Of a stretch of DNA of 64,000 bases, positions 1,649 through 64,000 are shown one piece after another; position 1 is the stretch's first letter; every line of letters starts with the position of its first letter. The notes beneath the pieces were generated by a model. That model was not told the DNA's origin and ran no database searches. It saw nothing but the letters and a program-made list of their open reading frames with translations. The position numbers and the translations under genes are program-made. The stretch is from the NCBI GenBank assembly GCA_965202585.1, contig OZ241829.1, forward strand, positions 72,726,001 through 72,790,000, written 5' to 3'. This DNA is from Thalia democratica. Its lineage: Eukaryota.

Positions 1649-2204
1649 ATGATAAAACTTCGACTACGTTTTGATGTCAGTTGGAGGAAAATTATTCTGG
1701 GTGTAGCTGGTATATCTGCTACTATTTTTGCATTGCAATATTTCACTTTTAAAAACAATAAACTGAAAGGCTGTTTGATATATGATGTTGTACAAAATAA
1801 AACAGACTCAAAGAAAAACAACAAAATGTCATACGTAGTTTCTGCAAAACCATAAAAATATTATGGATATGTATGTAATTTTTAAGGCTATTATATCTAA
1901 CAGTAGGGATGTATTTAAAACTACTTTGAAAACAATTGGCTTTATGCTGAAGTATATGGATGAAACAGACAAAAATAAAATAATCATTATCTTTAATACA
2001 CTAAGAATATTAAAAAAAGATGACGATGATAATGGGAAGATGTGTTTTAAAATATTGTGTGAATTTGCAAACCAAAATAGTTCTTTAGAAGATGATGCAA
2101 AAAAACTTTTAAAAAGTTACTCAATCTTGTTTGAAAAGTTTAATTACATTAGAATTAATAACTACAAAACTTTTGTTGAAGATAAAAATAAATGCTTGCT
2201 TTAA
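1649..2204 (+). pseudogene. Array copy A1: leader-type gene with a ~1-kb frameshifting internal deletion
   Basis: ORF 1649-1855 carries the family leader and ends at VSAKP*. ORF 1863-2204 is in another frame and matches the C-terminal third of copy 46479 (FMLKYMDE, LFEKF). The junction gcaaaacca|taaaaatattatggatatg joins sequence equivalent to ~46682 and ~47682. Confidence 0.9.
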
Positions 2205-3301
2205 GAAGATACTGATTAAAAAGCGCTTTATGTTAAGTTGTATTTGTTTACATGACTTTAGTTTTCGTGTATCATAATAACATATTTTTGTTATAACTAA
2301 TAAATAAATGCACAAAAGAATGACTTTTTTATAGAATAAGATAGTTAATTCGTTGAAATACTTAAAAGAAATATTTAATAACTTAAAAAATTATTATTAA
2401 CCGAAAGGTTAATTTGAGATTAAATTAAACTCGAAAGTAATATTCAAAGTTTGAAATACTTTTATAAGGTTAAAACAAAACTTAACATTGATGGTAAAAC
2501 TATAATAGATAGTATGTCATAAAATACTAAAATATTAAGATGTAACTTAGACCATACTGAAAAAAGATTTTTTTTTATTTTTTCTAAATGAATTTATACT
2601 TATCACCATAATTGTCTAGTTTTAAGCGCTACACTAAAATAAACGCTAAACAAACTACACATTAACAATTTATTTTAAACCACATTAAAAATGATGGAAA
2701 CAAAACATCTAGAAAAGTTATAATTAATCGATAAAATTAAAGCAAGACAAGTTTTGATTACCAGTTGAATTTTAATTAATTTAACATATTCTAAAATTGA
2801 CTCAATTAGTCTTATTAAAACACAACGGAATTTTAGTTATAAAAGAAAAATAACTACTAATTTTTTGCTTCTAAAGCTTAAAAACAATAATTATTAAAAA
2901 ATATAATTTTAGTTTTTTTAGTTATATCAAAATTTTTATAAAGTAATACATATTCACAGTAAATAGATAATGACTAGTAGTTTATATTTGTATAAGTACA
3001 GCGTACTAATATTGGTGTGAAATACGAATTTATACGGATTTATAATTAGCGTTGTGAAACAAACTACCATGCTTTTCAGCTGTTTGAGTATTTGTTTAAT
3101 GGATATTTATTTATTAATATCCTTATTTTTTATTGATAAATGTATTAACTTATGTTTTATTAAGTATAGTTTGCAATATTAAAATGAACACTGCTTATTT
3201 TATTATTAAAAAAAGCGATATAGTGTTCTTACGACACGTGAAAATACCGGCGTTGGATTTGATAAGTGTCGGCTATATATCCTTGATTATATGGTTTACA
3301 C

Positions 3302-4242
3302 TAGGGATGGGCAACGTACGGCCCGCAGGCCGGATCCGGCCCCCGGAGTCAAAATGACCGGCCCCCAAACCTTTTTTAAATATAAACGGAATCTGGCCTG
3401 CGGACAAAATTTATCCGGCCCGCGAGTGGATGATTCGGCCCGTTAGCCATTTTCAAAATTTATATGAAATCCTACAAGCCAATGTATGTGTTACAAAATT
3501 TGTATAAAACATTTTAAAAATTATTTTCACAAAATAAACTTTAAGACTTTAACCTAAAAACGTTTTTAAAAGTTATTTTTAACTTTTGTAGTAATAAAAA
3601 CACTCTTTTGTTGTAGTACCTTGTTCTGTTTCAAGTAAATTGAATTAATTCTATCACAAATTATCCAAAAACATTGTTTACTGTACTAACTTAGATGATC
3701 TTACCTATCATAATGATTTTCTTAAAAAATGACATGTAAAAAATTGATGTCTTTGCTAGATATGTAGTGAGCTGTTCTTATAAATGTTAAAAAAAGTAGT
3801 ATAATTTCGAATAGTGAAAAACTTTTAATGTTTTAGTTTGAAATCTTAGGCTCGAGAAACTTAATTATTGTTTTTATAAAACAAACTAGTATTAATTCGT
3901 TTCAGAGTTGTAATAAATACAAAATTATGAATACTTTATAAAATTTAACTTAAAGTTTTATACTTAAGAACCTTGGTAATTAAAAAATTGATTAAAAGTT
4001 TTAAAACACCAGATAAATTAGCATCCAGCCAAGTTCAAGTCTTTTGAAGTTTATTCTATTCGGATACGAACCTTGTCTAAAATTAGTATTTAGCCGGATC
4101 TGGATAACATTTTTGAATAAAGATCCGGATTTAAAAAAGGATCCAACTGAATCCGGTAGATCACTTATTCGAAATGCTTCGGCCCGCTAAGGACTAATTT
4201 TTTTAGATCCGGCCCATTAACTATTTACGTTGCCCACCCTTA
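3302..4242. mobile_element. Non-autonomous hAT-type DNA transposon (MITE)
   Basis: 17-bp TIRs TAGGGATGGGCAACGTA / TACGTTGCCCACCCTTA (2 mismatches). 8-bp TSD GTTTACAC (3294-3301) / GTTTACAT (4243-4250). GGCCC and CCGGATCC subterminal motifs. The paralogous site near 51050 is empty. Confidence 0.88.
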
Positions 4243-6317
4243 GTTTACATGTAAATCGAGTTAAATAACTTACTGTGACTAACGGCTTAAATTTATTAGT
4301 TAGTTTTTATTTTCTTTAGGTTTTTATAATAACTAAGTTTAAACTGACTTGTCTTATTAAGTTAAATTCAAGTTCAATTTGTGCATACAACAAAAAAACT
4401 AAACCCTGCTCACAACTTTGCTTATGTAAATATTATAAAATGTTTTTGTTTAGTACTGGTACTGTCTCTTAAGTAAAATTATTTATAAGATGCTCAAAGT
4501 ATGAGTAAAATAAATAGCTTAGAAGTTTGACAACATCTACTTCATGCCTTTTTACAATATGCTCAATTAAATCTGACTATTTTAAAATCTACACTTCTTA
4601 GATCTTAACACTAACATCTTGACAAACTAAGTACGAACATCTTTAGTATCAATAACCGCTTTATTTACCACATACTTTAACTTTTTGTTTTAAAGTATAT
4701 CATAAAACAAGTAAATCATCTTAGGGATGGTAAACTTCTGTAGTCAAAGGACGAGATTTATACCAAGCTATAGTACCTTTATGTGCACAGTTGATGACTT
4801 TCAAACTAATTATTTAACACTTGATTACTTATTTGGTAATGTTTGCTTTGTAAGCTAAATACTTAACGACTATCATTATTTCTACAAGCATTTTGAAAAT
4901 TATTATAATAATAAATTAAGGCTTAAAAAATACAGTGAGTATGTTTTACAAACAGAAAGTCCTATAAAACGCAATACGTACTACATTTAAATCATCGTTA
5001 CTATAACCTATAATTAATTTTAAACAACGGTAACTTTTATTGCGGAGAAGTAGTCATTTATATCAACTTTTCCATGTTAGACCACAGCTCTATGTATCAA
5101 AATACACTAATCAATTACTCTTCTGATACTTTAAAAATGCAGCATTTAAAGTGATACAGACAGCTACTGAAAAGTTTAAAAAGACAACAACATAAATAAA
5201 ATTTTAGTCGAAAGTTTTTTACAAAAAAAATACACTTAAAACATACAACGACAAAATAAAATAAATAAAAATGACAAAATTTATGTCTAATAAAATGTAA
5301 TATTACAGTTTTCTGAATATGTTATACTGAATTGTTTCAAACGTTAATGTTTTCTTCTAACATAAAATTTATTATAGTTTGACTCTTTCGGGTAAACATT
5401 AAAAATAAAAATAATTTTTGAATATTTATACAAAAACAAATATTTCTAAATCTCATTATGTTAGAACTTGTGAGTTAGTATTAAAAAAAGTATATATTAA
5501 CAATATAATTAAAAAAAAATACTTTTTTTTTTCTTTCTTTTAAAAAAATACTTACAGGTAAAACAAATAAATTCTAAAACTAAAAACTATTAATAAGTGA
5601 TAAAATATAACGAAAATGAGTTTCATTTTTTCATCAATAGTTATACATTTTTGTTTAATTAAGTTCAAATACATATAAATTTGTAAATTATTTAAAGAAA
5701 TTTTAATTTTCAATCAAAATTAATGATTAAATTTACTTTTATGTCAGTAAAAAAATAACATATGTATTTACTTAACTTATACGTTCATTAGACTTAAAAC
5801 TGAGCTTAAAAATAAACTAATTTCATAGTGATTTAGCATTTTTCCTTCTACTTTACTAAGTGTTATGTTATGTCTTAAGTTTGTTAAAGTTCAAATCTTT
5901 CTAAAATAAGTATATTTATGTTTCGATTTTAATAAAAAAAAAAATTTTAATTTTTAATTTTGCTAAATTTTAGATATTGCAATAAAAATGAAGTATTTAC
6001 TCAAAAAACTACCAAATCAAAAGCTAAATAAAATAATAATGCTCAGTCTTAATCTTATAGCCTTTAAAAAATTTAAATATGAATATTCAGTATGTTTTAA
6101 TGTTTCTTAAAATAAAAAACAATAAAGTTTTTGTTTTGATAATAAAGTTTTAAAATAAAACATTATAAATTTATTTTTTTATGGATACTTTTTTAAAATA
6201 AAAGGCTGCTAGCTCATCTCTTTTATTTAAAAGTTATGGAAAAGTGTATTGTTAATTATTAATAATTTTATTAAAAACAATAGATTAATAATTTGTTAAC
6301 AGGTGAGTAGTTGTAAA

Positions 6318-7928
6318 ATGATAAAACTTCGATTAAGTTTTGATTTCAGTTTAAGCAAAGTTATTCTGGGTGTAGCTGGTATATCTGCTACTACTTTTGC
6401 ATTTCAGTATTTCATTTCAAAGAACAATAAATTAAACGGATTGTTAGAAAATTATTTTGGTTTGAAGAAAGGCATTTTAGTGTCAACTTTAGTTTCTTCA
6501 AAAACTTTGGTTGAGCCTGAAATCGGTAAAGATAATTTAGCTAAAAATGAGTTCAAAAACAGCAAAACTGAAAATGATTTAAAATTGTTTACAAGTAAAA
6601 GTAAAAGTGTTTCCCCCCCAGTTGTAAGTAAGGAAGTAATCCGAAAGATAACGGTAAGTAACCGTGAATTCAATTCAAAAAGTGATAAGTCAATACCAAA
6701 ATCTGATCCAAACTGCGAAGAAACTATTTCAAAAACCGAATCAAGCTATGAAAAGTCAGCCTCGAAAATCGACTCAAACTGTGAGAAGTTAGTATCAAAA
6801 ACTGAATTGAACTGTAAAATGCCAATCCCAGAAACTGATTTAGATTGTAGAAAATCAACTTTAAAGTTTGATTTAGACAACACAAACGTTGATGAAGGAA
6901 GTTTAAACCAATTGAAAAACAAAAGTACAGAATTTCATTACAGTAAAGTTTCAAGTGGGTTTAAGAAGATAGGTAACATAAAAGATGGTAGCCAATTTAA
7001 AATGACGGATAAAAATACTGATATGTTTAATAAGAATATTGATATAAACTATAAAAATTCAGTCTCAAAAACTGATACAAACTGCAAAAAGTCTATTTCA
7101 AAGTCTGTCCAAGACAAAACGAATATCAATAAGGAAAGTCAAGACCAATTGTCAATTAAAAGTGTAAAAATTCTTGACAATAAAAATATTATAGGAGCAA
7201 GTGCAAGTACATTAAAGGAGGATTTTCAAACTTTTGAGAAAAAATCTAACGTGCATATTAAAAAAAAGCCTGAAAATAATAAAGTTGAAAAACTTCGTAA
7301 TGAATTAAATGAGCAGTATTTATTTTTTGAGAAGACCTTAAAACTTATAAATGCTGAACAAAAAGCACATGAGAATAATATTGGTCAATTGGAGACAAAT
7401 ATTTCTGTTGCTTCATTGTATAAAGTAATATCAAACCGTAAAAATACAATTTTAGAAAATCTAAATAAACCAAAGGGTAACAGAATTTTGAAACAGTTTT
7501 TTCAAAGTATATTTAGTTTACAGCTAAAGGTTTGGAAAAAAGCGAGTGTATGTTTAAAATACAAAAGTAAATTATCCGATGAAAAAAATGAAAGTATTAA
7601 GGATACGTTTGATAATATAAAAGCTTTATTAGACATATGTGATGATACATTAAAAAACACTTTAAAAAGAATTAATATAGTGCTAAAGTATATTGATGAA
7701 ACTGATAAAATTGAAATAAATAATATTAATAAGTCACTTAATGAGATAAAAATGAATATAATGATGCAGAAGTTGAAAAATACATTCCAAGAGTTAGGAA
7801 AAGAAAATATTATTTTAGATGATGATATAAATGACATTTCAGATAGCTTGAAAAACTTGTTTTGCAAGTACAATCAAGTTTGTTCTAATTTCTACAAAAT
7901 TTTAGCTAAAGGTTTTATCACTAAATAA
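6318..7928 (+). CDS. Array copy B1, intact, 536 aa: signal-anchor leader, 11-aa repeats, 49-aa-type repeat, helical C-terminal domain
   Basis: Uninterrupted ORF. ATG 6318 aligns with the start of all paralogs (the ORF track uses an upstream GTG at 6303). Preceded by AACAG at 6298-6302 and followed by AATAAA at 8076. Confidence 0.88.
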   Translation: MIKLRLSFDFSLSKVILGVAGISATTFAFQYFISKNNKLNGLLENYFGLKKGILVSTLVSSKTLVEPEIGKDNLAKNEFKNSKTENDLKLFTSKSKSVSPPVVSKEVIRKITVSNREFNSKSDKSIPKSDPNCEETISKTESSYEKSASKIDSNCEKLVSKTELNCKMPIPETDLDCRKSTLKFDLDNTNVDEGSLNQLKNKSTEFHYSKVSSGFKKIGNIKDGSQFKMTDKNTDMFNKNIDINYKNSVSKTDTNCKKSISKSVQDKTNINKESQDQLSIKSVKILDNKNIIGASASTLKEDFQTFEKKSNVHIKKKPENNKVEKLRNELNEQYLFFEKTLKLINAEQKAHENNIGQLETNISVASLYKVISNRKNTILENLNKPKGNRILKQFFQSIFSLQLKVWKKASVCLKYKSKLSDEKNESIKDTFDNIKALLDICDDTLKNTLKRINIVLKYIDETDKIEINNINKSLNEIKMNIMMQKLKNTFQELGKENIILDDDINDISDSLKNLFCKYNQVCSNFYKILAKGFITK

Positions 7929-9800
7929 CTAAATATGTTGATATATAAGACTATAAAACATTCTGTTTCGTTCTTTTTTGCTGTTTCGTTCTGTTTTTTG
8001 TTTACTCGTATTATTAAAAAAATTTTGCTTTTGTTTATAAATTCAATGCACAACAAGTGTAACTCAATTTGGTAGAATAAATAATGGTTATTTAAAGACA
8101 TTTTCGTCACATAAGTCAACGATTACAAAAATATAAATACTTTAGATACTTTACATAAATTTAAATTATACTTAAATATGATCTTCAACATCGAGAATAT
8201 TTTCTTAAACTCAACATAATTTATAATTTAGGTTTAAGTAGAAATAAACATTTTAATCTCTAGTTATGATATATAAATATTATTAAATAACATCTTTGTG
8301 ATGATTCTTTAGTTAAGTTTGTTTATTTTAAATTTTAATTGTTTACTAACTAGGTTCCATAAAATTAAAACATATCATCTTAAAAATAATGGCATTTTGT
8401 GTAACTACGCTTATAACAATTAGAAACTACAGAAAATAAATAATCATAAAACAATAAACATTAATAGTTGTCAAAAAATCAAAACATACTTTTTCAAAAT
8501 GCATTTGATTTTAAAATGAGTAATTGAAATTTTAGTTTTAATAAGAATGATGTTAATTCAATATTTGCTTTATACTTAAATAGTGAGTTTGGTGAAAAAT
8601 AAAATAGTGTTTATAATTTTCATTTATTAAATATTATGGATAATTTATGGGCAGTATGATATGAAGCGAGTCGATATTGTACTAGTGTTCGAATAAAGAC
8701 AATAAAATTATTTTTTTAACACTGATCTAGGTTAAATTTATTTTCAAGAGTTATAATTGTTTAGTTATTAGTTTGAAGAGTAAACTATTGATAAATGCTT
8801 TGACTTCTTTTCTTACTTGACGTCTAAATAAATATATCTTTCTTTGTTTAGTTTATTCACAAACTAAATACAAGAATGATAAAGTATGTAATACAAAACA
8901 TATAAACTTACAAAAATAATAAAAGAATTAAATTTTTTATCCAAAACACTTTTTGAGACTTCGATTTTTTTGTTAATAGAAGCTGTATTATAAATGAATA
9001 TTTTTTACTGTCACAATATTGTAATATATACCCAGGTGTTCTTTTTTAATTAAATTCAAATTACCTTTGATATGTGCGCCCTATAAAAAACTATTTAAAT
9101 ACTGAATTTTCAGAACTTTATTTGCTATGTAACCATGGACAACTGTCTACTAAAGTGTTATAGTTTAAAAATTTACTCTCAGTGAAAAAAAATTAAATTG
9201 TTTAGTTTTTATCAAACAATACTTGTAAAAATCTTCTTATTATTATGTTTGATGGAACATGTAATAGTTATTTAAAACTGTTAAAAAATAGTTCTAAATA
9301 TATATTCATTTGTAAACTAGCACAACATTAAAATTCTGTTCTAAAGTACCATGCAGAATTTTGTAAGTAAATATTTAAAAACAAAAAGTATAATTTATTG
9401 ATTTATCTCAGACAAGGCTAAGTACGCTGAAAAATAAAGCTAATTTATTTAAAAAAATATTTTAAACATTAAGATAAGGATTTAAAAAGTTCATTTTTTG
9501 ATTCAATAAATAATTTAATCTTAAGGTATTTATATGTTTTTTTATAGAATTTCAATCAGTAGACTACAGGTATAAATTACTCATAAAAGTGTACAAAACG
9601 CACATCAAAATTTTTATCAAAGTTTAAGTTTTTCAGAGTTTTTTCGTATATAGGTAAGCTTCAAAATCTTAATAATTTATCTATTAAAAGATTTTTTTTT
9701 GATGTGTCAGTAGCTTTTTTAACGTTAGCCAAGAAATTTTAAAAATATAAATTAGTTTAAAGCTTCATGTTACAGGTGAGCAGTTAGTAAAACTTTTATA

Positions 9801-11517
9801 ATGATAAAACTTAAATTTTGTTTTGATGTCAGCTTTACCAATGTTATTCTGGGTGTAGCTGGTATATCTACTACAGTTTGTGGATTTCAGTATTTCATTT
9901 TAAACAAAAGTAAGCTAAAAGATTTTTAAAGAACGATATTGTACGGAATAAAACACACTCAGAGAAAGAGAGTAAAGTGTCAAACCTAGTTTCTGCAAAA
10001 CCAACAATTGTGTCAAAACTTAGTAAAAACAAATCAGCTACAGATGCCTTCAAAAACAACAAACCTCAGGTTGGCTTAGATAAGTTTTCAAATAAATATA
10101 AAGGATATATCACTCCTACTAACGAAATCTTTAGAAAGACATCAGATTGTAGAGGTGAATATAACTCAAACTATGAAAAAACAATCTAGAAATCTGATTT
10201 AAACTATGTAGGACTAATTCCTTGAAATATATCATGCAAAGCGAATATTACTGAAGTACGTTTAGGTCAAGTAAAAGATAAAAGCATAAAGGCTCTTGAT
10301 AAGATAGCTGGGATTAGAACTAATGCAACTAATTCTAATGACGATTTACAAACTGTTGAGGAAAAATCTAAAGTAAATATTAAAAAGGAGCCTGTAAAAA
10401 AAGTAAGTCCAGACCAATTGAACGATGAAAGAACTCAGGTTCTTGATAAGGAAAATAGTTTAGAAGCTGATAGAAATACCTCTAATGACGATTTGCAAAA
10501 TGTTGAGGAAACATCAAAAGTAAAAATTGAAAATGAGCCTTTGAATGAAGGAAGATTAGAAAAATTAAAAGATGAAAATGTAAAAGTTCTTGACGAAGGA
10601 GCAAGTTCAGAAGCAGACACAAGTACTACAAGTAATGACGATTTTCAAATGTCAAGGTAAAATATAAAGTGTGTATTAAAAAGAAGCCTATAAATAAAAA
10701 TAGTTCAGACCATTTGATAGATAAAAATATAAAAGTTCTTGGCAAAAATGCTAGATTCAAAAATATTGAAAGTTCTACAAAAGACGGTTTGCAAACTGTT
10801 AAGGTCATACCTTAGGAGAAAAAATAAAAGGATCTGAAAATAGAATAGAACAACTACGTAACGATTTACTTCAACGGCAACAATTTTTTGAGGAGATTCT
10901 TAGATTAATAAAAACTGAAGAGTTTGAACTTGACCAAAACCTCGATCAGCTGAGAAAAGGGACATCAGCAATTTCTTTGTATAAAAAAGTTTGCAATCGT
11001 CAAACTGAAATCCGTGAAAAGAAGACCGATCAAATTTACAATAAAAATATGAAAGATTATTTTAAAGATGTTTGTGATTTAAAGGAAAAAGTATGGAAAG
11101 AAGCGGGTAATAAACCAATACATGCCACTACTTAATTATCAAACAAAAAACAGAAGAATCTCAAGGACAAGTTTGATTGTATACAAGATGTGTTAGAAAA
11201 TTGTGGAGGCTTAGTTGAGCTTTATTTTAAAACAGTTAAGTCTATGGTCGAGTTTATGGAAGTTAATGAATCTAAAACTGAACTTTTTTTTTGAAGTGTC
11301 TGATCATTTTCTTTCTGAAAATGAGGAGTATCAGAAGAAAATTCTCATAATGTTTTGCCGTTTTAAAAATAAATTTAGCTGTGATGCTATATGGTCAACT
11401 TTAGATACTACAAAGAAAAATTTTGGTTGTTTGTTTCGTAAGTTTTACTGTATTTGTAGAAATAGTTATAAGACTTTAGTTGAAGATGAGTATGAAAAAT
11501 ATGATGATAAAAATTAG
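9801..11517 (+). pseudogene. Array copy C1, multiple frameshifts and stops
   Basis: Leader at 9801 ends at TAA 9927-9929 after a 1-nt loss in a T run. Fragments 9977-10189, 10418-10660 and 11215-11517 are colinear with the intact C-type copy at 22844. Four 49-aa-type repeats. Confidence 0.9.
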
Positions 11518-11519
11518 AA

Positions 11520-14494: not shown

Positions 14495-15976
14495 ATGATA
14501 AAATTTCGATTAAGTATTGATGTCAGTTTGAGCAAAGTTATTCTTGGTGTAGCTGGTATATCTGCTACAATTTGTGCATTTCAGTATTTTACTTCGAAGA
14601 AAACAAAACTAAAATGCTCTTCAAACATTGATTTTGTACAAAATGGAATGGAATCACAGATAGCTAACAAAGTGTCGAATTTTATTTCAACAAAACCTAC
14701 CGTTGAGCCCAAAATCACTAAAAACACATCATCTAAAGATGAGCTGAAAAACATAAAAGTTGAAAAAAATTTACTTGCTTACAAAAATAAAGGTTTCAGT
14801 CCAATTGAAGAAGTCGTCAAAAATCCGTCAGTTAGCAAAAGTAAGCCCAAACTATACTGTGAAGAGTTAGTATCGAAAACCGATTCGAAACGTAAAAGGA
14901 AATTACCGAAAACTGAATCAAACTGTGAAAAGTCTATCATAAAAACTTCTCTTAACTGTGATAAGTCAACTTCAAAAAACAAACCACACTGTGAAAAAAC
15001 AACCTTAATATTCGAATCAAAATGTGAAAAATCAATCTCAAAAGTCGACTCAAACTGTGAAAAGCAAATATCAAAAACTAGCTCAACTTATGAAAATACC
15101 ACCTTAAAACCTAATTTTAGTTTTAAAGAAACCATCTCAGAAAATGAATCAGAAATAGTGAATATTGATGAAGTAAGTCCAGGGCAACTGGCTGATAAGA
15201 GTATAAAGCATTCTAGACAACAAGTTAGCTTGGAAGTTAATAGTTTAAATGGTAATTCTCAAACTGATGTAGAAAAAAATAAACTTGAGACTAAAAATCA
15301 AACTGAGTATAAACTTAAAATATTACGTAAAGATTTAAAACAGCTTGAAAGGCTATTGAATCAGATATTTAAACTCATAAAAAAAGAAAAGGATGAACTT
15401 GAGAAAAATCTTGATTTGTTGGAAAAGGGTACATCAGTTGCTAAATTAAATAATAGCATTTGCTATCGACTCGATAAAATCCGTAAAAAGTTGGATGATT
15501 AAAAATGCAATGAGTATTTGAAACAGATTACTTTGAGTTTTTGCAATTTAAAACAATTAGTATGGAAAGTATCAGTAAACAGTTTAAAACATTTTGCTAG
15601 ATTGTCGGATGATAAACATAAAACTACTAGGGAAATGTTTGATTGTATTAAAACTATAATGAACAATTTTGGAGATTTTGTTGGGAATACTTTGAGATCA
15701 ATTAAGTTTATGCTGGAATATATGAACATGAATGTTTCTAAAGCAAACAAGTATTTCAAAACACTTGAAGATCTAAAAGCTTGTGAACTAAAATGTTTTG
15801 AAACATTTTTTAATTATGAAAATTCAAGCCAATATAATATTGTAAAAGACATTGTAATAAAAATAGAAGATAGTTTGAAGGAGTTGATCGATTGCAAAGG
15901 AGTTTTTGAAAGTTATAAAACATTAGTTGGAAATGAATATCAAAAGTATGTTGACAATGAGAAAATTACTGAATAG
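14495..15976 (+). pseudogene. Array copy D1 with a single in-frame TAA at 15500-15502 (335-aa truncated product; 493 codons if read through)
   Basis: ORFs 14495-15502 and 15518-15976 are in the same frame. D1 gat gat TAA aaa tgc aligns with D2 aat aat CGA aaa tgc. No other lesion seen. Confidence 0.85.
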
Positions 15977-32352: not shown

Positions 32353-32521
32353 ATTTTAATAAACATGATTGTTGAATTACTACATTAAGTTTTATAAAAC
32401 AACAATTGTTAACATTAAGCTTTTAGTATTAATACAAACCAAAATATTTTATCAGTTATTTTTCTTCGTAAACTATGAATGTAAGTTAAATTACAGCATA
32501 TTTACATAGGTAGATACTAAT

Positions 32522-35618: not shown

Positions 35619-36134
35619 TACTAATTAAATAAAAATTTAACTATATTTTGTCATGCTGGTCATAATAATGAATATTATAGCTCTATTTATCCATAAACAA
35701 TTTTAAAAGTTATTAGTTTCAAATGAATTCATGTTCGAGCAATAAGTTATTGATAACGACTTTATTAGTTTACATTTTTGCTGAAATTTCATAGATTCAG
35801 CATTCATTATTTTTTTTACATTTTTTTTTTTTTGAACTTTTATCGTTTAAAGAACGGTTATCAGTGTTTAAATTCTGAGCAAATTTAAATGAAAGATATA
35901 TTTTCTATAAGTTTTTTAAAAAATGCATAAATAGTTTTATATAAATAGCTTTTATATAACTTAACGAAATTTATGAAAAAAGAAAAATACTTTTCAAATT
36001 TATTTATACTTTTTAGATACTGAATAATTGGTGTTGTTGCTTGAATTTTATCAAATTTATTTAATGAATATATTTCATTTAATAGCATATTTTAGTTTTA
36101 AGTTGCAAGTCAATAGTATAGTATAAATGTTAAA

Positions 36135-46300: not shown

Positions 46301-46478
46301 CTTAAAAATAAACTTTTACAGTTTTATTTTATTTTAAATATTTTTATCGGAAATAAATACTAGCTTACGTCTTTATTTAAAAGTTTTTAAAAGTTTTATC
46401 GTTTTTCTTGTAACGTTTTACTTAAACGAGTTAATTAACAATTTAAATTACAGGTGAGTAGTTAGTGAAGTTAGTAAA

Positions 46479-53074: not shown

Positions 53075-54190
53075 AAATTTTAATTGAAACTTTTTTACCA
53101 AAACATTACACTTAAAACATACAACAACAAAATAAAATAAATAAAGATGAAAAAATTTATGTCTGTATTTATTTATTAAAATGTAAAAGTAAATTTTAAT
53201 TTGTTATACTGAATTATTTCAAACGTTAACGATTTCTTGTAACATAAAATTAATTATAGTTTGACTCTTATGGGTAAAACGTTAAAACTAAAAAAATATT
53301 TTTGTATATTTTTACAAAAACTAATATTGCTAAATGTCATTATGTTAAAACTTGTGAGTTAGTTTTAAAAAAAGTATATATTTACAATATAATTAATAAA
53401 ATCTTTTTTTTTTTTTTTTTTTTTAATACTTACAGGTAAAAAAATTAATTCTAATGCTTAAAACTACTAATAAGTGTTAAAATATAAGGCATATAAGTTT
53501 AATTTTTTCATTAATAGTTATACATTTTTGTTTCATTTAAGTTCGAATACATATAAATTTGTAAATGCTTTAAAAACTTTCAATTTTTAATCAAAATCAA
53601 TGATTAAATTTACTTTTCTGTCAGTAAAAAAATGATGTATGTACTTTTTTAACTTATATGTTCATTTGACTTAAAACTGAGCATAAAATTTAAACTAATT
53701 TCATAGTGATTTAGCATTTTTCCTTCTACTTCACTAAGTTATGTCTTAAGTTTGTTAAAATTCAAAACTTTTTCAAAATAAGTAATTTTATGTTTCGATT
53801 TTGATTAAAAAAAAAACTTATAAATTTCGGATTAATTTTGCTAGATATTATGTATTGCAATAAAAATGTAGTATTTATTCGAAAAACTACTAAATCAAAA
53901 GCTAAATAAAATAATTATTCTCAGTCTTAACCTTTAAAAAATTTAATTATGAGTATTCAGAATTTTTTAATGTTTTTTAAAATAAAAGAAATTAAGGTTT
54001 TTGTTTTGATAATAAAGTTTTAAAATAAACTGTTATAAGTTTAGTTTTTTATGGATACTTTTTAAATCTGCTAGCTTATGTCTTTAATTTAAAAGTTTTG
54101 AAAAAGTTTATCGTTAATTATTGTCACGTTTTATTAAAAACAATAAATAATTAATTTATTAACAGGTGAGTAGTTAGTACCACTTGTAAA

Positions 54191-55755
54191 ATGATAAAAC
54201 TTCGACTAAGTTTTGATCTCAGTTTGAGCAAAGTTATTCTGGGTGTAACTGGTATATCTGCTACTACTTTTGCATTTCAGTATTTCATTTCAAAGAACAA
54301 TAAACTAAACGGGTTGTTAGAGAATGATTTGAGTTCTAAGAAAGACATTATAGTGTCAAATTTAGTTTCTCCAAAAACTTTGGTTGAGCCTGAAATCGGT
54401 AAAGATAATTTAGCTAAAAATGAGTACAAAAACAGCAAAGCTGAAAATGATTTAAAATTGTTTACAAATGAAAGTAAGAGTGATGCCGTTCCAATTGTCG
54501 GTAAGGAAGTAATCCGAAAAATAACGAATTCAGTTCAAACAGTGATAATTCAATCTCAAATTCTGATCCAAACTGCGAAGAAACTATTTCAAAAACCGAA
54601 TCAAGCTATGAAAAGTCAGCCTCGAAAATCGACTTAAACTGTGTGAAGTTAGTATCAAAAACTGAATTGAATTGTAAAATGCCAAACCCAGAAACTGATT
54701 TAGATTGTAGAAAATCAACTTTAAAGTTTGATATAGACAACACAAACAAAAGTACAGAAATTCTTTGCAGGAAAGTATCAAGTGGGTTTAAGAAGATAGG
54801 TAACATAAAAGATGATATCCAATATAAAATGACGGATAAAAATACTGAATTGTTTGATAAGAATACTGATATAAACTATAAAAATTCAGTCTCAAAAACT
54901 GATTCAAACTACAAAAAGTCTATTTCAAAGTCTTTTCAAGACAAAACGAATATTAATAAGGAAAGTCAAGATCAATTGTCAATTAAAAGTGTAAAAATCC
55001 TTGACAATAAAAATATTATAGGAGCAAATGCAAGTACTTCAAATGAGGGTTTTCAAACTTTTAAGAAAAAATCTAATGTGCATATTAAAAAAAAGCCTGA
55101 AAATAATAAAGTTGTAAAACTTCGTAATGATTTAAATGAGCAGTATGTATTTTTTGAGAAGACCTTAAAACTTATAAATGCTGAACAAAAAGAACATGAA
55201 AATAATATTGGTCAGTTGGAGACAAATATTTCTGTTGCTTCATTGTATAAGGTAATATCAAACCTTAAAAATGCAATTTTAGAAGATCTAAATAAACCAA
55301 AGGGTAACAGAATTTTGAAACAGTTTTTTCAAAGTGTATTTAGTTTACAGCTAAAGGTTTGGAAAAAAGCGAGTGCATGTTTAAAATACAAAAGTAAATT
55401 ATCTGATGAAAAAAATGAAAGTATTAAGGAAACTTTTGATAAAATAAAAGCTTTATTAGACATATGTGATGATACAATAAAAAACACTTTAAAAAGAATT
55501 AATATAGTGCTAAAGTATATTGATGAAACTGATAAAAATGAAATAAATAATATTAATAAGTCACTTAATGAGATAAAAATGAAGATTATGATGCAGAAGT
55601 TGGAAAATACATTTCAAGAGTTAGGAAAAGAAAATATTATTTTAGACGATGATATAAATGACATTTCAGATAGTTTAAAAAACTTATTTTGCAAGTACAA
55701 TCAAGTTTGTTCTAATTTCTACAAAATTGTAGCTAAAGGTTTAATCACTAAATAA
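54191..55755 (+). pseudogene. Array copy B2 with a 13-nt frameshifting deletion
   Basis: B1 ataacg-GTAAGTAACCGTG-aattc versus B2 ataacg-aattc near 54527. The downstream frame 54643-55755 is open. An additional in-frame 33-nt deletion. 17 differences in the last ~223 aa versus B1. Confidence 0.9.
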
Positions 55756-57627
55756 CTAAATGTGTTAATATATTATACTATAAAACGTTCTGTTTCGTTC
55801 TTTTTTGCTGTTTCGTTCTGTTTTTTGTTTACTGGTATTATTACAAAAATTTTGCTTTTGTTTATAAATTCAATGCACAATAAGTGTAACTTAATTTGTT
55901 AGAATAAATAATGGTTATTTAAAGACATTTTCGTCACATAAGTCAACCATTACAAAAATATAAATACATTAGATACTTTACATAAACTTAAGTTATAATT
56001 AAATATGATCTTCAACATCGAGAATATTTTCTTAAACTCACATAATTTATGGTTTAGGTTTAAGTAGAAATAAACATTTTAATCTTTAGTTATGATATAT
56101 AAATATTATTAAATAACATCTTTGTGATGATTCTTTAGTTAAATTTGTTTATTTCAAATTTTAAATGTTTACTAACTAGGTTCCATAAAATTAAAACATA
56201 TCATCTCAGAAATAATGGCATTTTGTGTAACACGCTTATAACAATTAGAAACTACAGTAAATCAATAATCATAAAACTATAAACATTAATAGTTGTCAAA
56301 AAATCAAAACATGCTTTTTCAAAATGCATTTGATTTAAATTGAGTCATTAAAATTTTTGTTTTAATTAGAATAATGTTAATTCAATATTTGCTTTATAAT
56401 TTACAAATAGATGAGTTTGATGAAAATAAAATAGTGTTTATAATTTTCATTTATTAAATATTATGGATAATTTATAGGCACTATGATATGGAGCGGGTCA
56501 ATATTGTACTAGTATTCGAATAAAGAAAACAAAGTAATTTTTGACACTGATCTAGGCATAATTTATTTTCATGAGTTATAATTGTTTAGTTATTAGTTTG
56601 AAGAGTAAAATATTGATAAATGCTTTGACTTCTTTTCTTACTTGAAATCTAAATAAATATATCTTTCTTTGTTGAGTTTATTCACAAACTAAATACAAGA
56701 ATGATAAAGTATGTAATACAAAACATATAAACTTACAAAACTAATAAACAATTAATGTTTTTATCCAAAACACTTTTTGAAACTTGGATTTTTTTGTTAA
56801 TAGAAGCTGTCTTATAAATGAATATTATTTACTGTCACAGTATTGTAATATATACCTAGTTGTTCTTTTTTTATTAAATTTAAATTACCTTTGATATGTG
56901 CGCCCTTTTAAAAACTATTAAAATATTGAATTGTCAGAAATTCAATTGCTATGTAACCATGGACAACTGTCTACTAAAGTATTATAGTTTTAAAATTTAC
57001 TCTCAGTAAAAAAAAGTAAATTGTTTAATTTTAATCAATTACTACTTAAAAAAAACTTCTTATTATTATATTTAAATGTACATTTAATAATTGTTTAAAA
57101 CTAAATTAAAAAAATAGTTCTAAAGATATATTCATATAAAAGCTAGCACAACTATCAAAATCTGTTCTAAAGTACCATGGAGAATTTCGTTAGAAAATAT
57201 TTAAAACAAAAAGTATATTTGATTGATTTATCTCAAAAAAAGTAAAGTACGTTGAAAAAAATGAAACAATTTAAATAAAAAAAAAATTTAAACATAAAGA
57301 CAAAGGTTTAAAGATTTAATTTTTTATTTTATAGAATAGTTTAAATCTGAAGGTTTATCTGTGTTGTTTTATAAAACTTCAATCAGTAGACTACCGTTAT
57401 AAGTTACTCATAAAAGTGTACAAAATGCACATCAAAATGTTTTTAAACGTATGAGTTCCATAGTATTCATTTTGTTTGAAGGTAAGCTTTAAAATCTTAG
57501 TAGTTTATCTGTTTAACATTTCTTTAGTGTGTCAGTAGCTTTTTTAACGTTAGCAAACAAAATTTTAAAAAAGATAAACTACTTTAATGCTAAATGTTAC
57601 AGGTGTGTAGTTAGTAAAACATGTAAA

Positions 57628-59367
57628 ATGATAAAACTTCAAATAAGTTTTAATGTCAGTTTGAGCAAAGTTATTGTAGGTGTAGCTGGTATATCTGCTA
57701 CAGTTTGTGCATTTCAGTATTTCATTTTAAACAAGAGCAAGCTAAAAGGCTTTTTGAAGAACGATGTTGTACGGAATAAAACAGACTCAGAGAAAAAGAG
57801 TAAAGTGTCAAACCTAGTTTCTGCAAACCAACTATTGTGTCAAAACTCAGTAAAATTAGATAAGCTACAGATGACTTAAAAAACAAAAAACCTGAAAATG
57901 ACAAAGATAAGTTTTCAAATAAAAATAAAGGCTATATCACTCCTATTAACGAAATCTATAGAAATACATCAGATTGTAAAGGTGAATATAATTCAAACTA
58001 TGAAAAATCAATCTCAAAATCTGATTTAAACTATGTAGGACCAATTTCTGAAAATAAATCATGCAAAGCGAATATTACTAAAGTGCATTCAGGTCAAGTA
58101 AAAGATAAAAGCATAAACGCTCTTGATAATAAATCTGGGATTGGAGCTAATGCCAGCTATCTTCTAATGACGGTTTACAAACTGTTGAGAAAAAATTTAA
58201 ATTAGATTATAAAAAAGAGCCTGTAAATAAAAAAAGTCTAAACCAATTGAAAGATGAAAGAATTGAGTTTCTTGATAAGGAAATAAGTTTAGATGCTGAT
58301 ATAAGTACGTACCTCTATTGACGATTTGCAAAATGTTGAGGAAAAATCTATTGTAAATGTTGAAAAGGAGCACGTAAATGAAGATATTATAGTACAATTA
58401 AAAGATGAAAATGTAAAAGTTCGTGTCAAAGAAGTTAGTTCAGAAGCTGATACAAGTACTACAAGTACTTCTGGTGACGGTTTTCAAAAAGTATAATAAA
58501 ATGTTAAGGTAAAATATAAAGTTTGTATCAAAAAGAAGCTTGTATGTAAAAAATGTCCAGACTATTTGATAGATGAAAATAAAAAAGTTCTTGGCAAAGA
58601 TGCTAGATTAAAAGGTAATGCAAGTACTCTAAATGACGGTTTGCAAACTGTTAAGGTGAAACCTAAGAAGAATAAAAGAAAAAGATCTGAAAATAAAATA
58701 AATAAGCTTCGTAAAGATTTACTTCAGCAGCAAAGTTTCTTTGAGGAGACTCTTAGATTAATAAAAATTGAAGAAAATGAACTCGATCAAAACCTCGATC
58801 AGCTGAAAAAAGGGACATCAGCAATTTCTTTGTATGATAAAGTTTGCAATCGTTAAATTAAAATCCGTGAAAAGAAGACCGACCTAAATTACAACGAAAA
58901 TATGAAAGCTTATTTTAAAGATGTTTGTGTTTTAAAGGAAAAAGTATAAAAAGAAGCGGGAAAGAAACCAATATATGCCACTACTAAGTTAACAAACAAA
59001 AAACAGAAGAATCTTAAGGAAAATTTTGATTGTATACAAGATGTGTAAGAAAATTGTGGGGGTTTAGTTGATATTGTTTTGAGAAGAATTAGATTTATGC
59101 TTGAATATTTGGAAGTAGATGAACCTAAAACAAAATTTTTCTTTGAAGTGTATGATAATTTGTACATTGAAAATGAGGAATATCAGAAGAAAATTCACAT
59201 AATGTTTTGTGGTTATAAAAATAAATTTAGCAGTGATGCTATATGGTCAACTTTAAATACTATAAAGAATAATTTTGGTTGTTTGTTTTCCAAGTTTTAC
59301 TGTATTTGTAAAACTAGCTACAAGACTTTAGTTGAAGATGTTTAGATAAAATATATGATAAAATTAA
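57628..59367 (+). pseudogene. Array copy C3, multiple frameshifts and stops
   Basis: Leader at 57628 with a 1-nt loss near 57825. In-frame stops replace CAA (cgt TAA att) and TGG (gta TAA aaa). Fragments 58566-58856 and 59079-59345 match C2. Confidence 0.9.
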
Positions 59368-60734: not shown

Positions 60735-63457
60735 TACTATACTGTTGGCTTTAGCACTTATTACATTCCCAAAATTCCAGTTAAATTTAAAGTATTATAA
60801 AATATAAAGATGTTAAAAAATAAGTAACCAGATGAAGGTTGATCTAAAAAACTTAGCTATTGTTACAATAAACCTTTTTACATTAAATAGGCGAATAAAT
60901 CGTTACGTTTTTCAAATGATTATTATGCTTGACAAGTCTTCTTAAAAATCCTTTACGCCTAAATAATAAAATATTCTTTTCAAAATAATTTATTATTTAT
61001 TATTTTAATTTATAAGAACTACATGATTTTAAATTACTACTTGTATAAGAAAAATTATTTCATTAATCCTTTAAAAAATATTTTATGAATAAAAAACCAA
61101 ATGTTTGTTTTCGCAACTTTATGCATAAAGCTCAGTTCTTACTCAATAAAGAAATATTTTAAAATTTGTCTTTATACTTACAATTTATACTAACAATTAC
61201 AACCACGTACTTTAATCTTAAATTGATGAATTAAACGTATGGATGTTATTTAACTAGGTTTCTATATAAATCTGAAGGTAATGTTTAATGAAAAAAAAAA
61301 ACAAAAAAATAGCTATATTTTGCTTAACACTTTTTATTATCTACATTTGTTAAAACAGAAAAAAATATCCTTGAAAATAGTTTTTCTAATTTTTAAAACA
61401 GTTAATTTATTTATGTTTTCGTCAAAACTTTTCACTATATAACACTAATAAAGAGTTTTTCAAATTAATTATAAATAACAAAACCGAAACAGTTAAGATC
61501 TTATAAATATAATAAAATATATGAAGGAGTTTATAAATCAAAATACATGTTTTTTTTACAAATTTTAAATTCTATAACAAAATTAGTAGCAACATCGGTC
61601 AGTTTTGGATTAAGTTACTCAAAAGTAAAAGTAAATGTTGTTATATAATAAGAGAGAAAAAGAAAATAACACTCAAAAAATAATAAAAAATCACAAACAT
61701 ATTACTATCAAAAAAAAAATTATGTTCAGTTTCTGAACGAAATTGACAAAAAATTTATAAAGCTATGGATTAAGACTGAAGAATGCTAAATAAAGTATTT
61801 AAGCTTTTAGAGAAAAATTTTTAACTTAAAATAAACTGTAGAACTATTTTTTAAAATTCAATGGATTTGATAAAATAATTATCTATATCTAAACGTTTTA
61901 AAACTAGGAATCACACCTCAACAGTTTTGTTAAACTGCAGTTTATCATAAAAAACACGACTAAGTTTGAGTAGTTTTGGACAACTATTGCCGTAATCGTA
62001 AACAGTTATGAAAAAATAAAAACAATTACAAATGATACTTAAGCAAATATTGATTAGTTTGTGTACTATGATTATCAATCCTTACAAGTTTTCTAATTAA
62101 AGTTCATAAATATTTTTCTAGCTCTTTTTTATTTTTAAGTTTAAGTTTGTTGTTCAGAACGTAATGGTATTTTGTACCTTTATTTTTTTTTTATATTCTT
62201 TAAGTTCAAATTTTCTGTAAGTGATTCAATTTGTTGGTTATAAGAGTTAAGAATTTATATATTATAACTTTATGTATTACAATTACAAAATTAAGAAAAT
62301 TAAGATATTTCTTATACTTTAATATATGGCCTCTCTGGTAGTTTTTATTTTTAATTTACTTGAAACATTATCAGTTTATAAGTTTCAATAAATATTGAAC
62401 AAGAAACTGCAAGTTGTGATCGTAATACAACGTTATAATTATAATAACATTTTTAAAGCATAAAATTTTTCGGTACTTTTAACCAATATTTTTCAAAAAT
62501 GGTTCAATTGTTGAGATAGAGTTTCATAGTTTAAATTATTTCATTGATTTTTTATCTAATTAACCGATTAAATCAAAACATTTTAACACTTGTACTAGTA
62601 TTCAAACTCTTTAATCTGACTTATAACCTAAAAAATAAAAAAGATAATTAAACTGATATTTAATGTTTGCTGATCATTTACTTATGACAATGTTTTTTTT
62701 AGTATTTCATTTATTATCAAACCCTACATTACTTTTTATCTACGATACTTTTAATTATATAATTTACTTAAAATATGAACTTTTTTTTACAAAACAGCTT
62801 AACAAATTACATTGTAAATAAAAAATCAAAGTTCCATTGTAGTTTAAAAAAAAATTATAATTATTTTGAAGTGTTTTAAACAATTTCATAGACAGACTTA
62901 TCTGATTAATTTTAAATACATACAGAACTGAAATAATAGTATATGCTTCAAACTGTTATAAATTTTATTGAGACTAACTATGTGTTCATAGAACGTATTT
63001 GCTGATTTTAACTAACATTTTACTACTTTTCCGTATTAAAATTATTTTTGAACTATATTTAGTGGCCTTCCCCGAGAAAAGAAAAAAAAAACAGATTTAG
63101 TTTAAGTATTTAACAATGCCTTGAAAACTTTGGTAGATGTTTAAAACTTTTCATTTATTTTAATAAATGGTATTAGATTTATTCATTTTACATTTAATTA
63201 TAAATACTTGTACAAAATACTTTTGTTATAAACGTTCTACAAATTCGTATCACTTATGAAAAGAACTAATGCTTCAAAGTTAATTTCTTTATTAGATAAC
63301 CTATAAACTTATAAAGTTTTATTCAATAAACGATATTTACTGATTTGTAACTAGTCTTTACAACAGTATTCACTAACATGTTTTTAAATCTTATTTACTC
63401 ATAACCTTTTCATTAAGGTTTAAAATTACAAGAAAGTACTTTATTAAAACAGGTAAA

Positions 63458-64000
63458 ATGATAAAACTTCGATTGAGTATTGATGTAAGTTTGAGCAAAG
63501 TTATTCTTGGTGTAGCCGGTATATCTGCTACAATTTGTGCATTTCAATACTTTACTTCGAAGAAAACAAAACTAAAATGCTCTTCAAACACTGATTTTGT
63601 ACAAAATGAAATGGAATCACAGAAAGCCAACAAAGTGGCGATTTTTATTTCAACAAAACCTTACGTTAAGCCCAAAATCACTAAAATCACATCATCTAAA
63701 GACGAGCTGGAAAACAAAAAAGTTGAAAAGAATTTACTTGCTTACAAAAGTAAAGGTGTCAGTCAAGTTGAAGAAGTCGTTAAAAATCCGTCAGTTAGCA
63801 AAAGTAAGCCCAAACTATACTGTGAAGAGTTAGTATCGAAAACCGATCCGAAACATGAAAGGAAATTACCAAAAACTAAATCAAACAGTGAAAAGTCTAT
63901 CATAAAAACTTCTCTTAACTGTGATAAGTCAACCTCAAAAAACGAACAACACTGTGAAAAATTAACCTCAAAAATCGACTCAAAATGTGAAAAGTCAATC
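63458..64000 (+). CDS. Array copy D3, 5' part (181 open codons, runs off the window)
   Basis: Manual translation from ATG 63458 is open to 64000 and matches D1/D2. It is missing from the ORF track because no stop is reached. Confidence 0.85.
   Translation, partial: MIKLRLSIDVSLSKVILGVAGISATICAFQYFTSKKTKLKCSSNTDFVQNEMESQKANKVAIFISTKPYVKPKITKITSSKDELENKKVEKNLLAYKSKGVSQVEEVVKNPSVSKSKPKLYCEELVSKTDPKHERKLPKTKSNSEKSIIKTSLNCDKSTSKNEQHCEKLTSKIDSKCEKSI

Follow-up and report, generated by a model that had tools for sequence, protein, structure and literature searches.

The 64,000 nucleotides of Thalia democratica DNA analysed here (the window) belong to a tandem array of single-exon genes that spans roughly 1.3 Mb of one chromosome. 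The array contains at least 70–100 copies, 46 of which we analysed, and 29 of these 46 (63%) are broken; it also contains a 14-kb multi-gene block duplication with 97.9% identity, which indicates that the array grows in blocks. Within the window, ten places match a previously noted 32-mer with at most one mismatch, as compared with none expected from shuffled sequences, and an eleventh and more decayed copy starts at position 36135 (Table 1).

Structure of the array and of its products

At its N-terminus the encoded protein has a signal peptide or a membrane anchor of consensus MIKLRLSFDVSLSKVILGVAGISATICAFQYF, followed by a Lys/Ser/Asn/Cys-rich repeat region and then by a six-helix C-terminal domain of ca. 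225 aa. ORFs of 471–687 aa start at the leader ATG and are uninterrupted up to the stop codon; the leader, thus, does not have an exon of its own. Family proteins retrieved no match at threshold in Pfam, and an Atlas search gave no usable match. The structure model of the C-terminal 235 aa of copy 6 (28616–29320) is a six-helix bundle, for which Foldseek retrieved no match at E ≤ 0.001; the best structural match was a PhoU-like six-helix bundle, with a Z of 12.3 that falls below the bar of about 13 for helical bundles. A profile search among 1.84 billion proteins yielded 49 matches, and the eight that we inspected are family members or divergent relatives. The family is a lineage-restricted orphan of anchor, repeat and helical-bundle proteins. 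The consensus peptide of the anchor also starts proteins from other public assemblies (relatives that we compared as proteins), whose best match in the T. democratica genome is only 32–81% identical, and the residues that the last five untranslated codons would encode recur in them as well. Long-term selection clearly acts on the anchor peptide.

Table 1. Leader block copies in the window (window positions) and junctions of chimeric copies of the array (positions relative to the ATG)
Feature	Position	Strand	ATG	Remarks
Leader block copy 1	1614..1744	+	1649	Deletion derivative, leader fused to the final part of the C-terminal domain; remnant ORF 1863–2204; stop after codon 68
Leader block copy 2	6283..6413	+	6318	Intact 536-aa gene, 6318–7928; 10-nt deletion within the untranslated part of the block
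Leader block copy 3	9766..9896	+	9801	Broken gene, stop at codon 43; C-terminal homology in two frames, to about 11508
Leader block copy 4	14460..14590	+	14495	Interrupted by a stop at 15500–15502; resumes at 15518–15976
Leader block copy 5	22809..22939	+	22844	Intact 687-aa gene, 22844–24907; 147-nt coding repeat, 6.7 copies, at 23137–24118
Leader block copy 6	27738..27868	+	27773	Intact 516-aa gene, 27773–29323; 33-nt coding repeat at 28186–28407
Leader block copy 7	36100..36230	+	36135	Heavily decayed pseudogene with many stops; leader with about twice the usual number of changes, yet 41 codons open
Leader block copy 8	46444..46574	+	46479	471-aa ORF to 47894; C-terminal homology extends past the ORF to about 48023
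Leader block copy 9	54156..54286	+	54191	Broken at 54637; resumes at 54643–55755
Leader block copy 10	57593..57723	+	57628	Broken past codon 83; C-terminal homology at 58686–59354
Leader block copy 11	63423..63553	+	63458	Gene exceeds the window; intact 516-aa ORF in the genome
Junction g29803	-6..+24
Junction g122830	-33..+12
Junction g15618	+35..+72
Junction g183019	+74..+97
Junction g135399	-33..+142
Junction g112516	-15..+45
Junction L029	+50..+140

Conservation of the 5' block at silent sites

The conserved block covers ca. 130 nt, approximately from -35 to +96 with respect to the ATG, and is common to the eleven copies of the window and to the wider array. Its 5' part consists of ca. 35 nt of untranslated sequence, which is conserved too and starts at a splice-acceptor-like TTACAG located about 30 nt before the ATG. 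Nucleotide identity between types is 0.81–0.92 from +1 to +80, goes down to 0.63–0.70 by +100 to +270, and is about 0.4–0.5 upstream of -60; inside the block, identity between types equals that found within types. For comparison, the C-terminal domains of the deep types show 29–47% protein identity among seven representatives.

The near-identity of the leader in the eleven copies, silent sites included, had been noticed in a first-pass annotation of the window; our analysis of 46 copies confirms it and extends it beyond the window. The description is accurate for the consensus, which is fixed, but 73% of the leader positions are variable among the copies, in the form of rare private variants. 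Likewise, the annotation had every copy retaining the ATG and an intact anchor, and this holds for the window, where the first 32 codons are open from each of the eleven ATGs, but not for the wider array, where four of the 46 copies contain a stop or an indel within the first 34 codons.

It is extremely improbable that assembly or polishing homogenised this short repeated segment. The array is indeed repetitive and many copies contain frameshifts, although nothing specific points to an artefact. In independent unitigs from three runs and two samples, depth on the leader was about 2,000–2,400, versus 37–63 for single-copy pieces (about 40–60 times higher), indicating that the shared sequence is present in the raw reads; additionally, copies retain private and type-specific leader variants.

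To quantify silent conservation we used seven representatives, one intact copy per deep cluster. Fourfold third positions were identical in 94.5% of cases in the block (bootstrap interval 0.87–1.0) versus 66.5% in the next 194 nt (0.54–0.80), with non-overlapping intervals. Between types, pS was 0.15–0.19 in the leader (codons 1–32), 0.42–0.45 in codons 33–95 and 0.52–0.59 in the C-terminal domain. The corresponding pN/pS values were 0.55–0.9 for the leader and 0.42–0.72 for the downstream segment and the C-terminal domain; because pN/pS in the leader is no lower than elsewhere, ordinary selection at the protein level is insufficient to explain the pattern. Wherever amino acids were identical, the rate at which the same codon was used fell from 0.88 in the leader to 0.74 in the segment that follows it, and was 0.63 for the C-terminal domain.

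These values bear directly on the null proposed in the annotation, ordinary purifying selection in a young family, taken here as acting on the anchor peptide and combined with codon bias, which would be indicated by equal dS in leader and C-terminal domain together with congruent trees. The long-term selection on the peptide fits this null, and the genome is extremely AT-rich, which leaves few effective states for third positions. Nevertheless, a single codon bias does not account for three different rates of codon identity at identical residues, most leader residues have fourfold codon boxes, for which identity by chance is at its lowest, and the rare codon CTG is retained in most types. With pS in the leader far below the 0.42–0.59 of the rest of the gene, and with the excess of fourfold identity, the null is contradicted and we regard it as very unlikely.

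Divergence and recombination at the block

The behaviour of the block over time was also different from that of its flanks. Between recent duplicates, block and flank diverge at equal speed, and leader distance follows flank distance up to about 0.1; from there it reaches a plateau at 0.12–0.13, while the flank reaches 0.39. This behaviour is the same for intact and broken pairs, and the 29 broken copies retain the block to about the same degree as intact copies. Similarly, leader pS stays at 0.12–0.18 while C-terminal pS spans 0.09 to 0.59, and the ratio of leader to flank branch lengths, on the flank topology, is 0.81 for terminal, 0.56 for shallow and 0.14 for deep branches. Leader variants occur at all three codon positions and at rare frequency, and the high proportion of variable sites rules out a mutational cold spot as well as a simple model in which some sites are invariant and the rest free; the cold spot is also excluded because recent duplicates change at the flank rate and plateau only later. 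Part of the variants on terminal branches could be slightly deleterious polymorphisms that are still segregating, a situation that would look like erasure. The divergence of the leader is, then, decoupled from that of the rest of the gene, as predicted by concerted evolution.

We found seven chimeric copies, representing at least five events, whose junctions lie inside the block or at its edge, from -33 to +142 (Table 1); four of the seven arose between close relatives, with flanks 85–97% identical. Upstream regions and gene bodies thus reassort at the block, which bears out the idea that the leader serves as a crossover substrate. In an unbiased scan, four out of 14 junctions fell in the 130-nt block, which represents 9% of the scanned length, an enrichment of about 4-fold (hand-calculated binomial p of about 0.03). 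The same annotation had proposed that gene conversion is restricted to the leader, and here only the role of the leader stands, through the junctions and the decoupled divergence: a second junction zone lies at +460 to +940, within types the four-gamete test fails pervasively, and short patches are found all over the array. Conversion is, consequently, active across the array in general.

AU tests showed that the leader rejects the flank trees (4e-5 to 1e-3), but the upstream and downstream partitions also reject each other; as the tree of each partition is rejected by every other, incongruence among trees does not single out the leader. In the leader tree, well-supported shallow clades mostly match those of the flanks, and type-specific leader substitutions persist, indicating that homogenisation is incomplete. 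Rare variants common to several clusters were not in excess in the leader over the flanks. Two classical footprints of conversion were absent: GC3 was not raised in the block (0.19 versus 0.28, 0.21 and 0.25 in other parts), and leader distance among unrelated copies was independent of how far apart the copies lie, from 0 to 300 kb.

The reading that we favour, and that we consider somewhat likely, is that the uniformity of the block results from identity-dependent gene conversion and unequal crossing-over that, between types, are confined to an island of homology seeded by selection on the anchor. An island of high identity would be seeded by selection acting on the 5' end and its anchor peptide, and on this island non-allelic, homology-dependent conversion and unequal crossing-over would act between types otherwise too diverged to exchange sequence. 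Mutations would enter each copy at the ordinary rate and be erased or replaced before becoming old, which may be why divergence is capped at about 12%. The silent-site excess, the divergence cap, a short-term rate that is normal, dead copies that behave as intact ones do, and the junctions inside the block speak for this reading, and the flat GC3, the absent distance effect and the recombination beyond the leader speak against it.

A tentative alternative, on the unlikely side, is a functional constraint at the nucleotide level, with silent changes selected against in each surviving lineage. The block would then be a candidate cis-element read as DNA or RNA, such as a region for trans-splicing or translation control, a small-RNA target common to the family, or a promoter-proximal element coordinating or restricting expression of the array; the annotation had suggested one small RNA or a splicing enhancer. 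This fits the conservation of all three codon positions on deep branches without a reduced pN/pS, the TTACAG start and the conserved untranslated part, as well as the recurrence in other assemblies of the consensus peptide and of the translated last five untranslated codons; the lack of a GC3 rise and of a neighbour effect also suits selection better than conversion. However, the block changes at flank speed in recent duplicates, both intact and dead, nearly three quarters of its sites are mutated in some copy, and broken copies equal intact ones in conservation. Moreover, the leader showed no stable or covarying RNA fold (mean MFE z-score of -0.04; alifold consensus of -1.3 kcal/mol), and Rfam gave no match in the window at the gathering score. 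Selection on silent sites across ca. 100 redundant copies, mostly pseudogenes, would also need to be implausibly effective. With slightly more doubt still, the block may be a control element located in the 5' untranslated and initial coding sequence of each gene, which could serve a small RNA, or else a DNA-binding factor, as common target. By analogy with stochastic choice in clustered protocadherins, which is driven by conserved elements of promoters and exons, such an element could coordinate or restrict which of the ca. 100 genes are expressed, and the recombination at the block would follow from its being conserved.

Alternatively, a single 5' module could have spread in one past wave of recombination or chimeric duplication, at a date equivalent to about 6% divergence along each lineage, and have evolved neutrally since. 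A sharp plateau at about 0.12 with equal leader and flank rates below it, the star-like spectrum of rare variants, and the restriction of type-specific leader substitutions to clusters younger than the plateau are consistent with such a wave, and the 14-kb duplication shows growth of the array by blocks. We think this quite unlikely, because many independent exchanges would still be needed for more than ten deeply diverged types over 1.3 Mb, because the mapped junctions involve young relatives, so that exchange continued, and because the same peptide consensus in other assemblies would be left unexplained.

Comparison with other gene clusters

A uniform segment within an otherwise diverged cluster is a pattern already known from other gene clusters. 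In the tandem protocadherin clusters of fugu and zebrafish there is regional gene conversion, for which raised GC3 argues in fugu (PMC1852091, which cites Noonan et al. 2004). As in the Thalia array, tandem paralogs there have one coding segment homogenised, synonymous sites included, while the remainder is diverse, and the argument is also alike, in that selection on the protein cannot yield synonymous identity. However, the homogenised part of protocadherins is long, more than 99% identical and with raised GC3, whereas the Thalia block has 130 nt, about 88–92% identity and no raised GC3; the former lies at the 3' side of a variable exon and the latter is a 5' end that includes untranslated sequence. 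The protein families themselves are unrelated.

Conserved flanks act as recombination anchors in the antigenic variation of trypanosome VSG and Anaplasma msp2 genes. Segmental gene conversion also operates in the antigenic variation of Babesia ves genes (PMC7485966). These systems resemble the Thalia array in that short conserved ends around diverged bodies provide homology for exchange within the family, but they are programmed systems of somatic switching, found in bacteria or unicellular parasites, that have an expression site. In the Thalia array we found neither an expression site nor a 3' anchor, and the exchange that we show is germline and evolutionary only.

Precursors of conotoxins combine a conserved signal sequence with a hypervariable mature region (PMC3823881). 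The likeness lies in a near-constant, hydrophobic N-terminal leader on paralogs diverged beyond easy alignment, with conserved silent sites of debated cause. Conotoxin signal regions are reportedly low in synonymous change too (Conticello et al. 2001). This silent-site conservation of leaders in fast-diverging families of secreted and membrane proteins is an old puzzle, of which the array is a clean and quantifiable case. It separates the usual causes, since protein-level selection, a mutational cold spot and an RNA fold can each be set aside, and its ca. 100 copies on one chromosome, over half of them dead, constitute a natural experiment on non-allelic conversion versus selection, with junctions that can be mapped inside the block itself. 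The Thalia genes differ from conotoxin-like families in being single-exon, the leader not forming a separate exon, in products of 470–690 aa with repeats and a helical bundle instead of small Cys-rich peptides, and in a gene body whose pN/pS, unlike the mature region of those families, gives no indication of positive selection (dN/dS above 1). Finally, and unlike the conotoxin-like case, the mapped junctions of the Thalia array supply a concrete mechanism.

Architecture and growth of the array

The window has a G+C content of 24%, within a genome of 802-Mb, and carries eleven single-exon copies of one gene family (copies 1-11, in order of ATG). Products of intact copies are 471-687 aa long and start with a hydrophobic signal or anchor, followed by a Lys/Ser/Asn/Cys-rich region built from coding tandem repeats and by a C-terminal domain of about 225 aa. 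The repeats in the middle of the gene differ among the types into which the copies fall. The family extends well past the window: the conserved gene start, or leader, matches at least 69 candidate places and the proteins match more than 100 stretches, almost all of them in an array of about 1.3 Mb (72.43-73.74 Mb of contig OZ241829.1, hereafter C5), with the remainder on two small contigs. Our analyses cover 46 copies, about half of the array, of which 33 lie in 264 kb assembled around the window and 13 come from further loci; 17 keep a reading frame open over at least 440 aa and the other 29 are broken.

Stops are shared within some pairs of broken copies, such as the one at 36135 and a relative lying 30 kb downstream of it, which were therefore already dead when duplicated. 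A three-gene block of 14 kb that includes copies 1 and 2 recurs 154 kb downstream with 97.9% identity, which shows that the array expands by duplication of segments with several genes. Copy 1 arose by deletion, and an identical copy of it is carried by the duplicated block. Within the intergenic DNA there is also a GC-rich island, with similar stretches nearby, whose 160-nt core occurs only once in the window and which resembles a piece of a mobile element.

Features of the array, with positions as window coordinates unless given on C5 or relative to the ATG
Feature	Position	Description
ATGs of copies 1-11	1649, 6318, 9801, 14495, 22844, 27773, 36135, 46479, 54191, 57628, 63458	single-exon genes, all on the same strand
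Copy 1	1649-2204	leader and ~65 codons, followed with almost no gap by the last third of the C-terminal domain
Duplicated block, part in window	1-9000	copies 1 and 2
Duplicated block, downstream copy	C5:72,875,000-72,889,000	loci L043-L044
GC-rich island	3286-3445	GGCCCG/CCGGAT-rich; surrounding intergenic DNA 20-25% G+C
Similar GC-rich stretches	near 4080-4200	
TTACAG then GTGAGT	-35..-30 from ATG (e.g. 22809-22820)	opening of the leader block in most types
Coding tandem repeat, copy 5	23137-24118	147-nt units x 6.7
Coding tandem repeat, copy 6	28186-28407	Cys-containing 33-nt units x 6.7
Junction in g29803	-6..+24 from ATG	
Junction in g122830	-33..+12 from ATG	
Junction in g15618	+35..+72 from ATG	
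Junction in g183019	+74..+97 from ATG	
Junction in g135399	-33..+142 from ATG	
Junction in g112516	-15..+45 from ATG	
Junction in L029	about +50..+140 from ATG	

Extent and silent-site conservation of the leader block

The first-pass annotation had described the first ~100 nt of all copies as nearly identical amid a diverged remainder, and this was borne out. In 30-nt windows, nucleotide identity between types is ~0.4-0.5 upstream of -60, then 0.73-0.83 at -29..-1, reaches its maximum of 0.92 at +41..+70 and is 0.63-0.70 over +100..+270; from this profile we place the block at about -35..+96. Inside it, identity between types equals that within types, and the protein identity of the C-terminal domains is 29-47% between types versus 65-92% within them. 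At the 5' edge stands TTACAG, which resembles a splice acceptor. As judged from its motifs, the start of the block can be read both as a putative 3' splice acceptor and, shifted by one base, as the consensus of a 5' donor plus a CAGGTG E-box; D-type copies have lost this start. The untranslated part is neither a retro-copied spliced leader nor a dispersed repeat, because a 25-mer from it is confined to the array (11 matches with up to 2 mismatches). An assembly artefact was also ruled out by the depth at which unitigs pile up on the leader, ~2,000-2,400 versus 37-63 for single-copy pieces, in contig sets, apparently of DNA, from three public runs of two samples. These three were the runs in which the locus turned up, none of them of RNA.

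The block is also conserved at silent sites. Between-type pS was 0.19 for codons 1-32 and 0.44-0.45 for codons 33-95. In codon-level pairwise alignments of 33 copies, restricted to pairs whose C-terminal domains are less than 40% identical, pS and codon identity at identical residues were 0.18 and 0.88 in the leader, 0.42 and 0.74 in the next segment, and 0.59 and 0.63 in the C-terminal domain, so that silent divergence in leader and C-terminal domain, the comparison proposed at first pass, is unequal. The scarcity of variation noticed at fourfold-degenerate positions was likewise confirmed using one intact representative for each of seven deep clusters, which avoids pseudo-replication: at fourfold third positions, 208 of 220 leader comparisons were identical (0.945; bootstrap over codons 0.87-1.0), versus 135 of 203 in the next 194 nt (0.665; bootstrap 0.54-0.80). 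Codon bias does not explain the difference, because it is alike in both segments, and the silent-site conservation of the leader is real.

Persistence of leader changes and exchange among copies

Purifying selection on the protein as the sole cause was ruled out, since leader pN/pS (0.55-0.9) is not below that of other segments. A mutational cold spot was also discarded because the short-term rate is the same in the block and in its flank, chiefly the next 194 nt (+97..+290): in recent duplicates the leader is as divergent as the flank, and between the intact D-type genes at 27773 and 63458, for example, there are differences at 9 of 96 leader positions and at 12 of 194 next door. Leader distance tracks that of the flank up to ~0.1 and then stays at a plateau of 0.12-0.13, while the flank reaches 0.39, and intact and broken pairs behave alike. 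In pairs of dead copies, taken as a neutral control, leader divergence is half of that of the flank in two pairs, and the five pairs pooled give a leader/flank ratio of ~0.84, like other recent pairs. In at least one of 43 copies, a change is seen at 73% of the positions in the leader and at 67% of those in its 36-nt core. All three codon positions are affected, and a model with a few free sites and the rest invariant is ruled out; positions with a common minor allele make up 8% of the leader versus 37% of the flank. When branch lengths of the leader are fitted to the topology given by the 194 nt next to it, they amount to 0.81 of those of the flank on terminal branches, 0.56 on shallow internal ones and 0.14 on deep ones. 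New leader changes arise at a normal rate but fail to persist.

GC3 in the block is 0.19 versus 0.21-0.28 elsewhere, and comparison across gene segments revealed no footprint of GC-biased conversion in it. Neither was there any effect of neighbourhood on leader similarity between <10 kb and 300 kb, with a distance between unrelated copies of 0.19 at every spacing. Both absences would fit a nucleotide-level cis-element constraining the block, an explanation that we consider unlikely, because the normal short-term rate, the high proportion of variable sites and the equal conservation of dead copies all fit it poorly. A conserved RNA fold was ruled out (mean MFE z-score -0.04; consensus fold -1.3 kcal/mol), and no Rfam family matched in the window.

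Upstream (-300..-41) and downstream (+97..+290) partitions define mostly the same clusters, with exceptions. From these exceptions we mapped junctions in seven chimeras, comparing each at informative sites with its two best parents, although picking candidates by upstream/downstream discordance biases junctions to the middle. In g29803, g122830, g15618 and g183019 the parents are close relatives with flanks 85-97% identical, so their junctions were not forced into the block by missing homology elsewhere. Some of the seven may share an event, and at least five independent events lie behind them. Because of the selection bias, the interval -200..+1300 was also covered by an unbiased two-parent scan, which called 14 junctions: four at 0..+120 and ten at +460..+940, where the repeats lie and the C-terminal domain begins, and none at -200..-10 or +130..+450. 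Enrichment in the block is about four-fold (binomial p about 0.03, hand-calculated, with events partly non-independent). The leader is, hence, one of two junction zones and not the sole one; of the initial proposal of leader-restricted conversion, with the leader as crossover substrate, the substrate is supported by both sets of junctions and the restriction is not. These young junctions also fit badly with a single past wave that would have spread a 5' module, which agrees with the sharp plateau but seems to us quite improbable.

Among copies of one cluster, four-gamete failures and short alternating patches are pervasive from one end of the gene to the other, and close relatives commonly exchange short tracts. 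The suggested comparison of separate trees did show a leader tree incongruent with the others, but in AU tests the tree of each partition was rejected on every other partition; the tests are therefore uninformative on the leader specifically, and we dropped them as proof of leader-specific exchange. Well-supported shallow leader clades are mostly concordant with the flanks, type-specific leader substitutions persist, and sharing of rare variants across clusters, a sign of transfer, is not in excess in the leader over the flanks. Like the GC3, spacing and dead-pair results, these observations are at odds with conversion in its simplest form.

Relatives of the gene products, proposed mechanism and known systems

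The encoded proteins are orphans, with no informative relative by Pfam, ESM Atlas, Foldseek, VIA-align or profile searches. Pfam gave nothing at threshold and the Atlas no usable match, and a word-indexed search of 5.8 billion proteins retrieved three matches, all unnamed. A profile of the C-terminal domain yielded 49 matches, mostly short fragments, among 1.84 billion protein representatives, P0036 and P0042 being long and multi-stretch; eight others were read and are family members or divergent relatives. The domain is confidently predicted as a six-helix bundle (pLDDT 82.7, pTM 0.74), for which Foldseek found nothing at E <= 0.001 and the top VIA-align match was a PhoU-like bundle with Z 12.3, the bar of the tool for helical bundles being ~13; as modelled, the fold appears to be a generic helical bundle.

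The consensus leader also heads seven proteins from other public assemblies (P0002, P0003, P0008, P0010, P0034, P0047 and P0048). The top matches in this genome of the four relatives searched are 81% (P0001), 49% (P0003), 32% (P0034) and 28% (P0033) identical, and with no near-identical match here, these proteins most likely come from another species. P0034 keeps 27 of 32 leader residues despite its low overall identity; given that probable origin, the peptide consensus would then be under long-term selection. P0033 and P0012, likewise from other public assemblies, are distantly related to the C-terminal helical domain and do not have the conserved leader; they are either partial gene calls or indicate that the domain also occurs without the anchor. 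Scans of metagenome contigs with a degenerate-codon pattern and with protein guidance were both blank for family nucleotides.

We lean towards explaining leader uniformity by an identity island kept by selection together with homology-dependent non-allelic conversion and crossing-over. The island, at the gene start, would owe its persistence to selection acting on both the anchor peptide and the 5' end. Within types, conversion and crossing-over would act along the entire gene; between types, exchange would still be possible only on the island, and for this reason silent sites would be carried along and divergence capped at ~12%. The same exchanges would reassort upstream regions with gene bodies.

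In conotoxin-type families, the signal region is conserved at silent sites too. The layout of array genes resembles the conserved signal and divergent body of those families (PMC3823881), and the leader block is the same kind of phenomenon as the regional gene conversion of tandem protocadherin clusters (PMC1852091). In fugu protocadherins, regional conversion is argued from a raised GC3 (PMC1852091), whereas the block shows no such rise. In comparison with both systems, the array stands apart by the shortness of its block, which lies at the 5' end and takes in untranslated sequence, by single-exon genes with no GC3 rise, and by a body without positive selection. The phenomenon itself is already known from protocadherin clusters, and the array adds another case.
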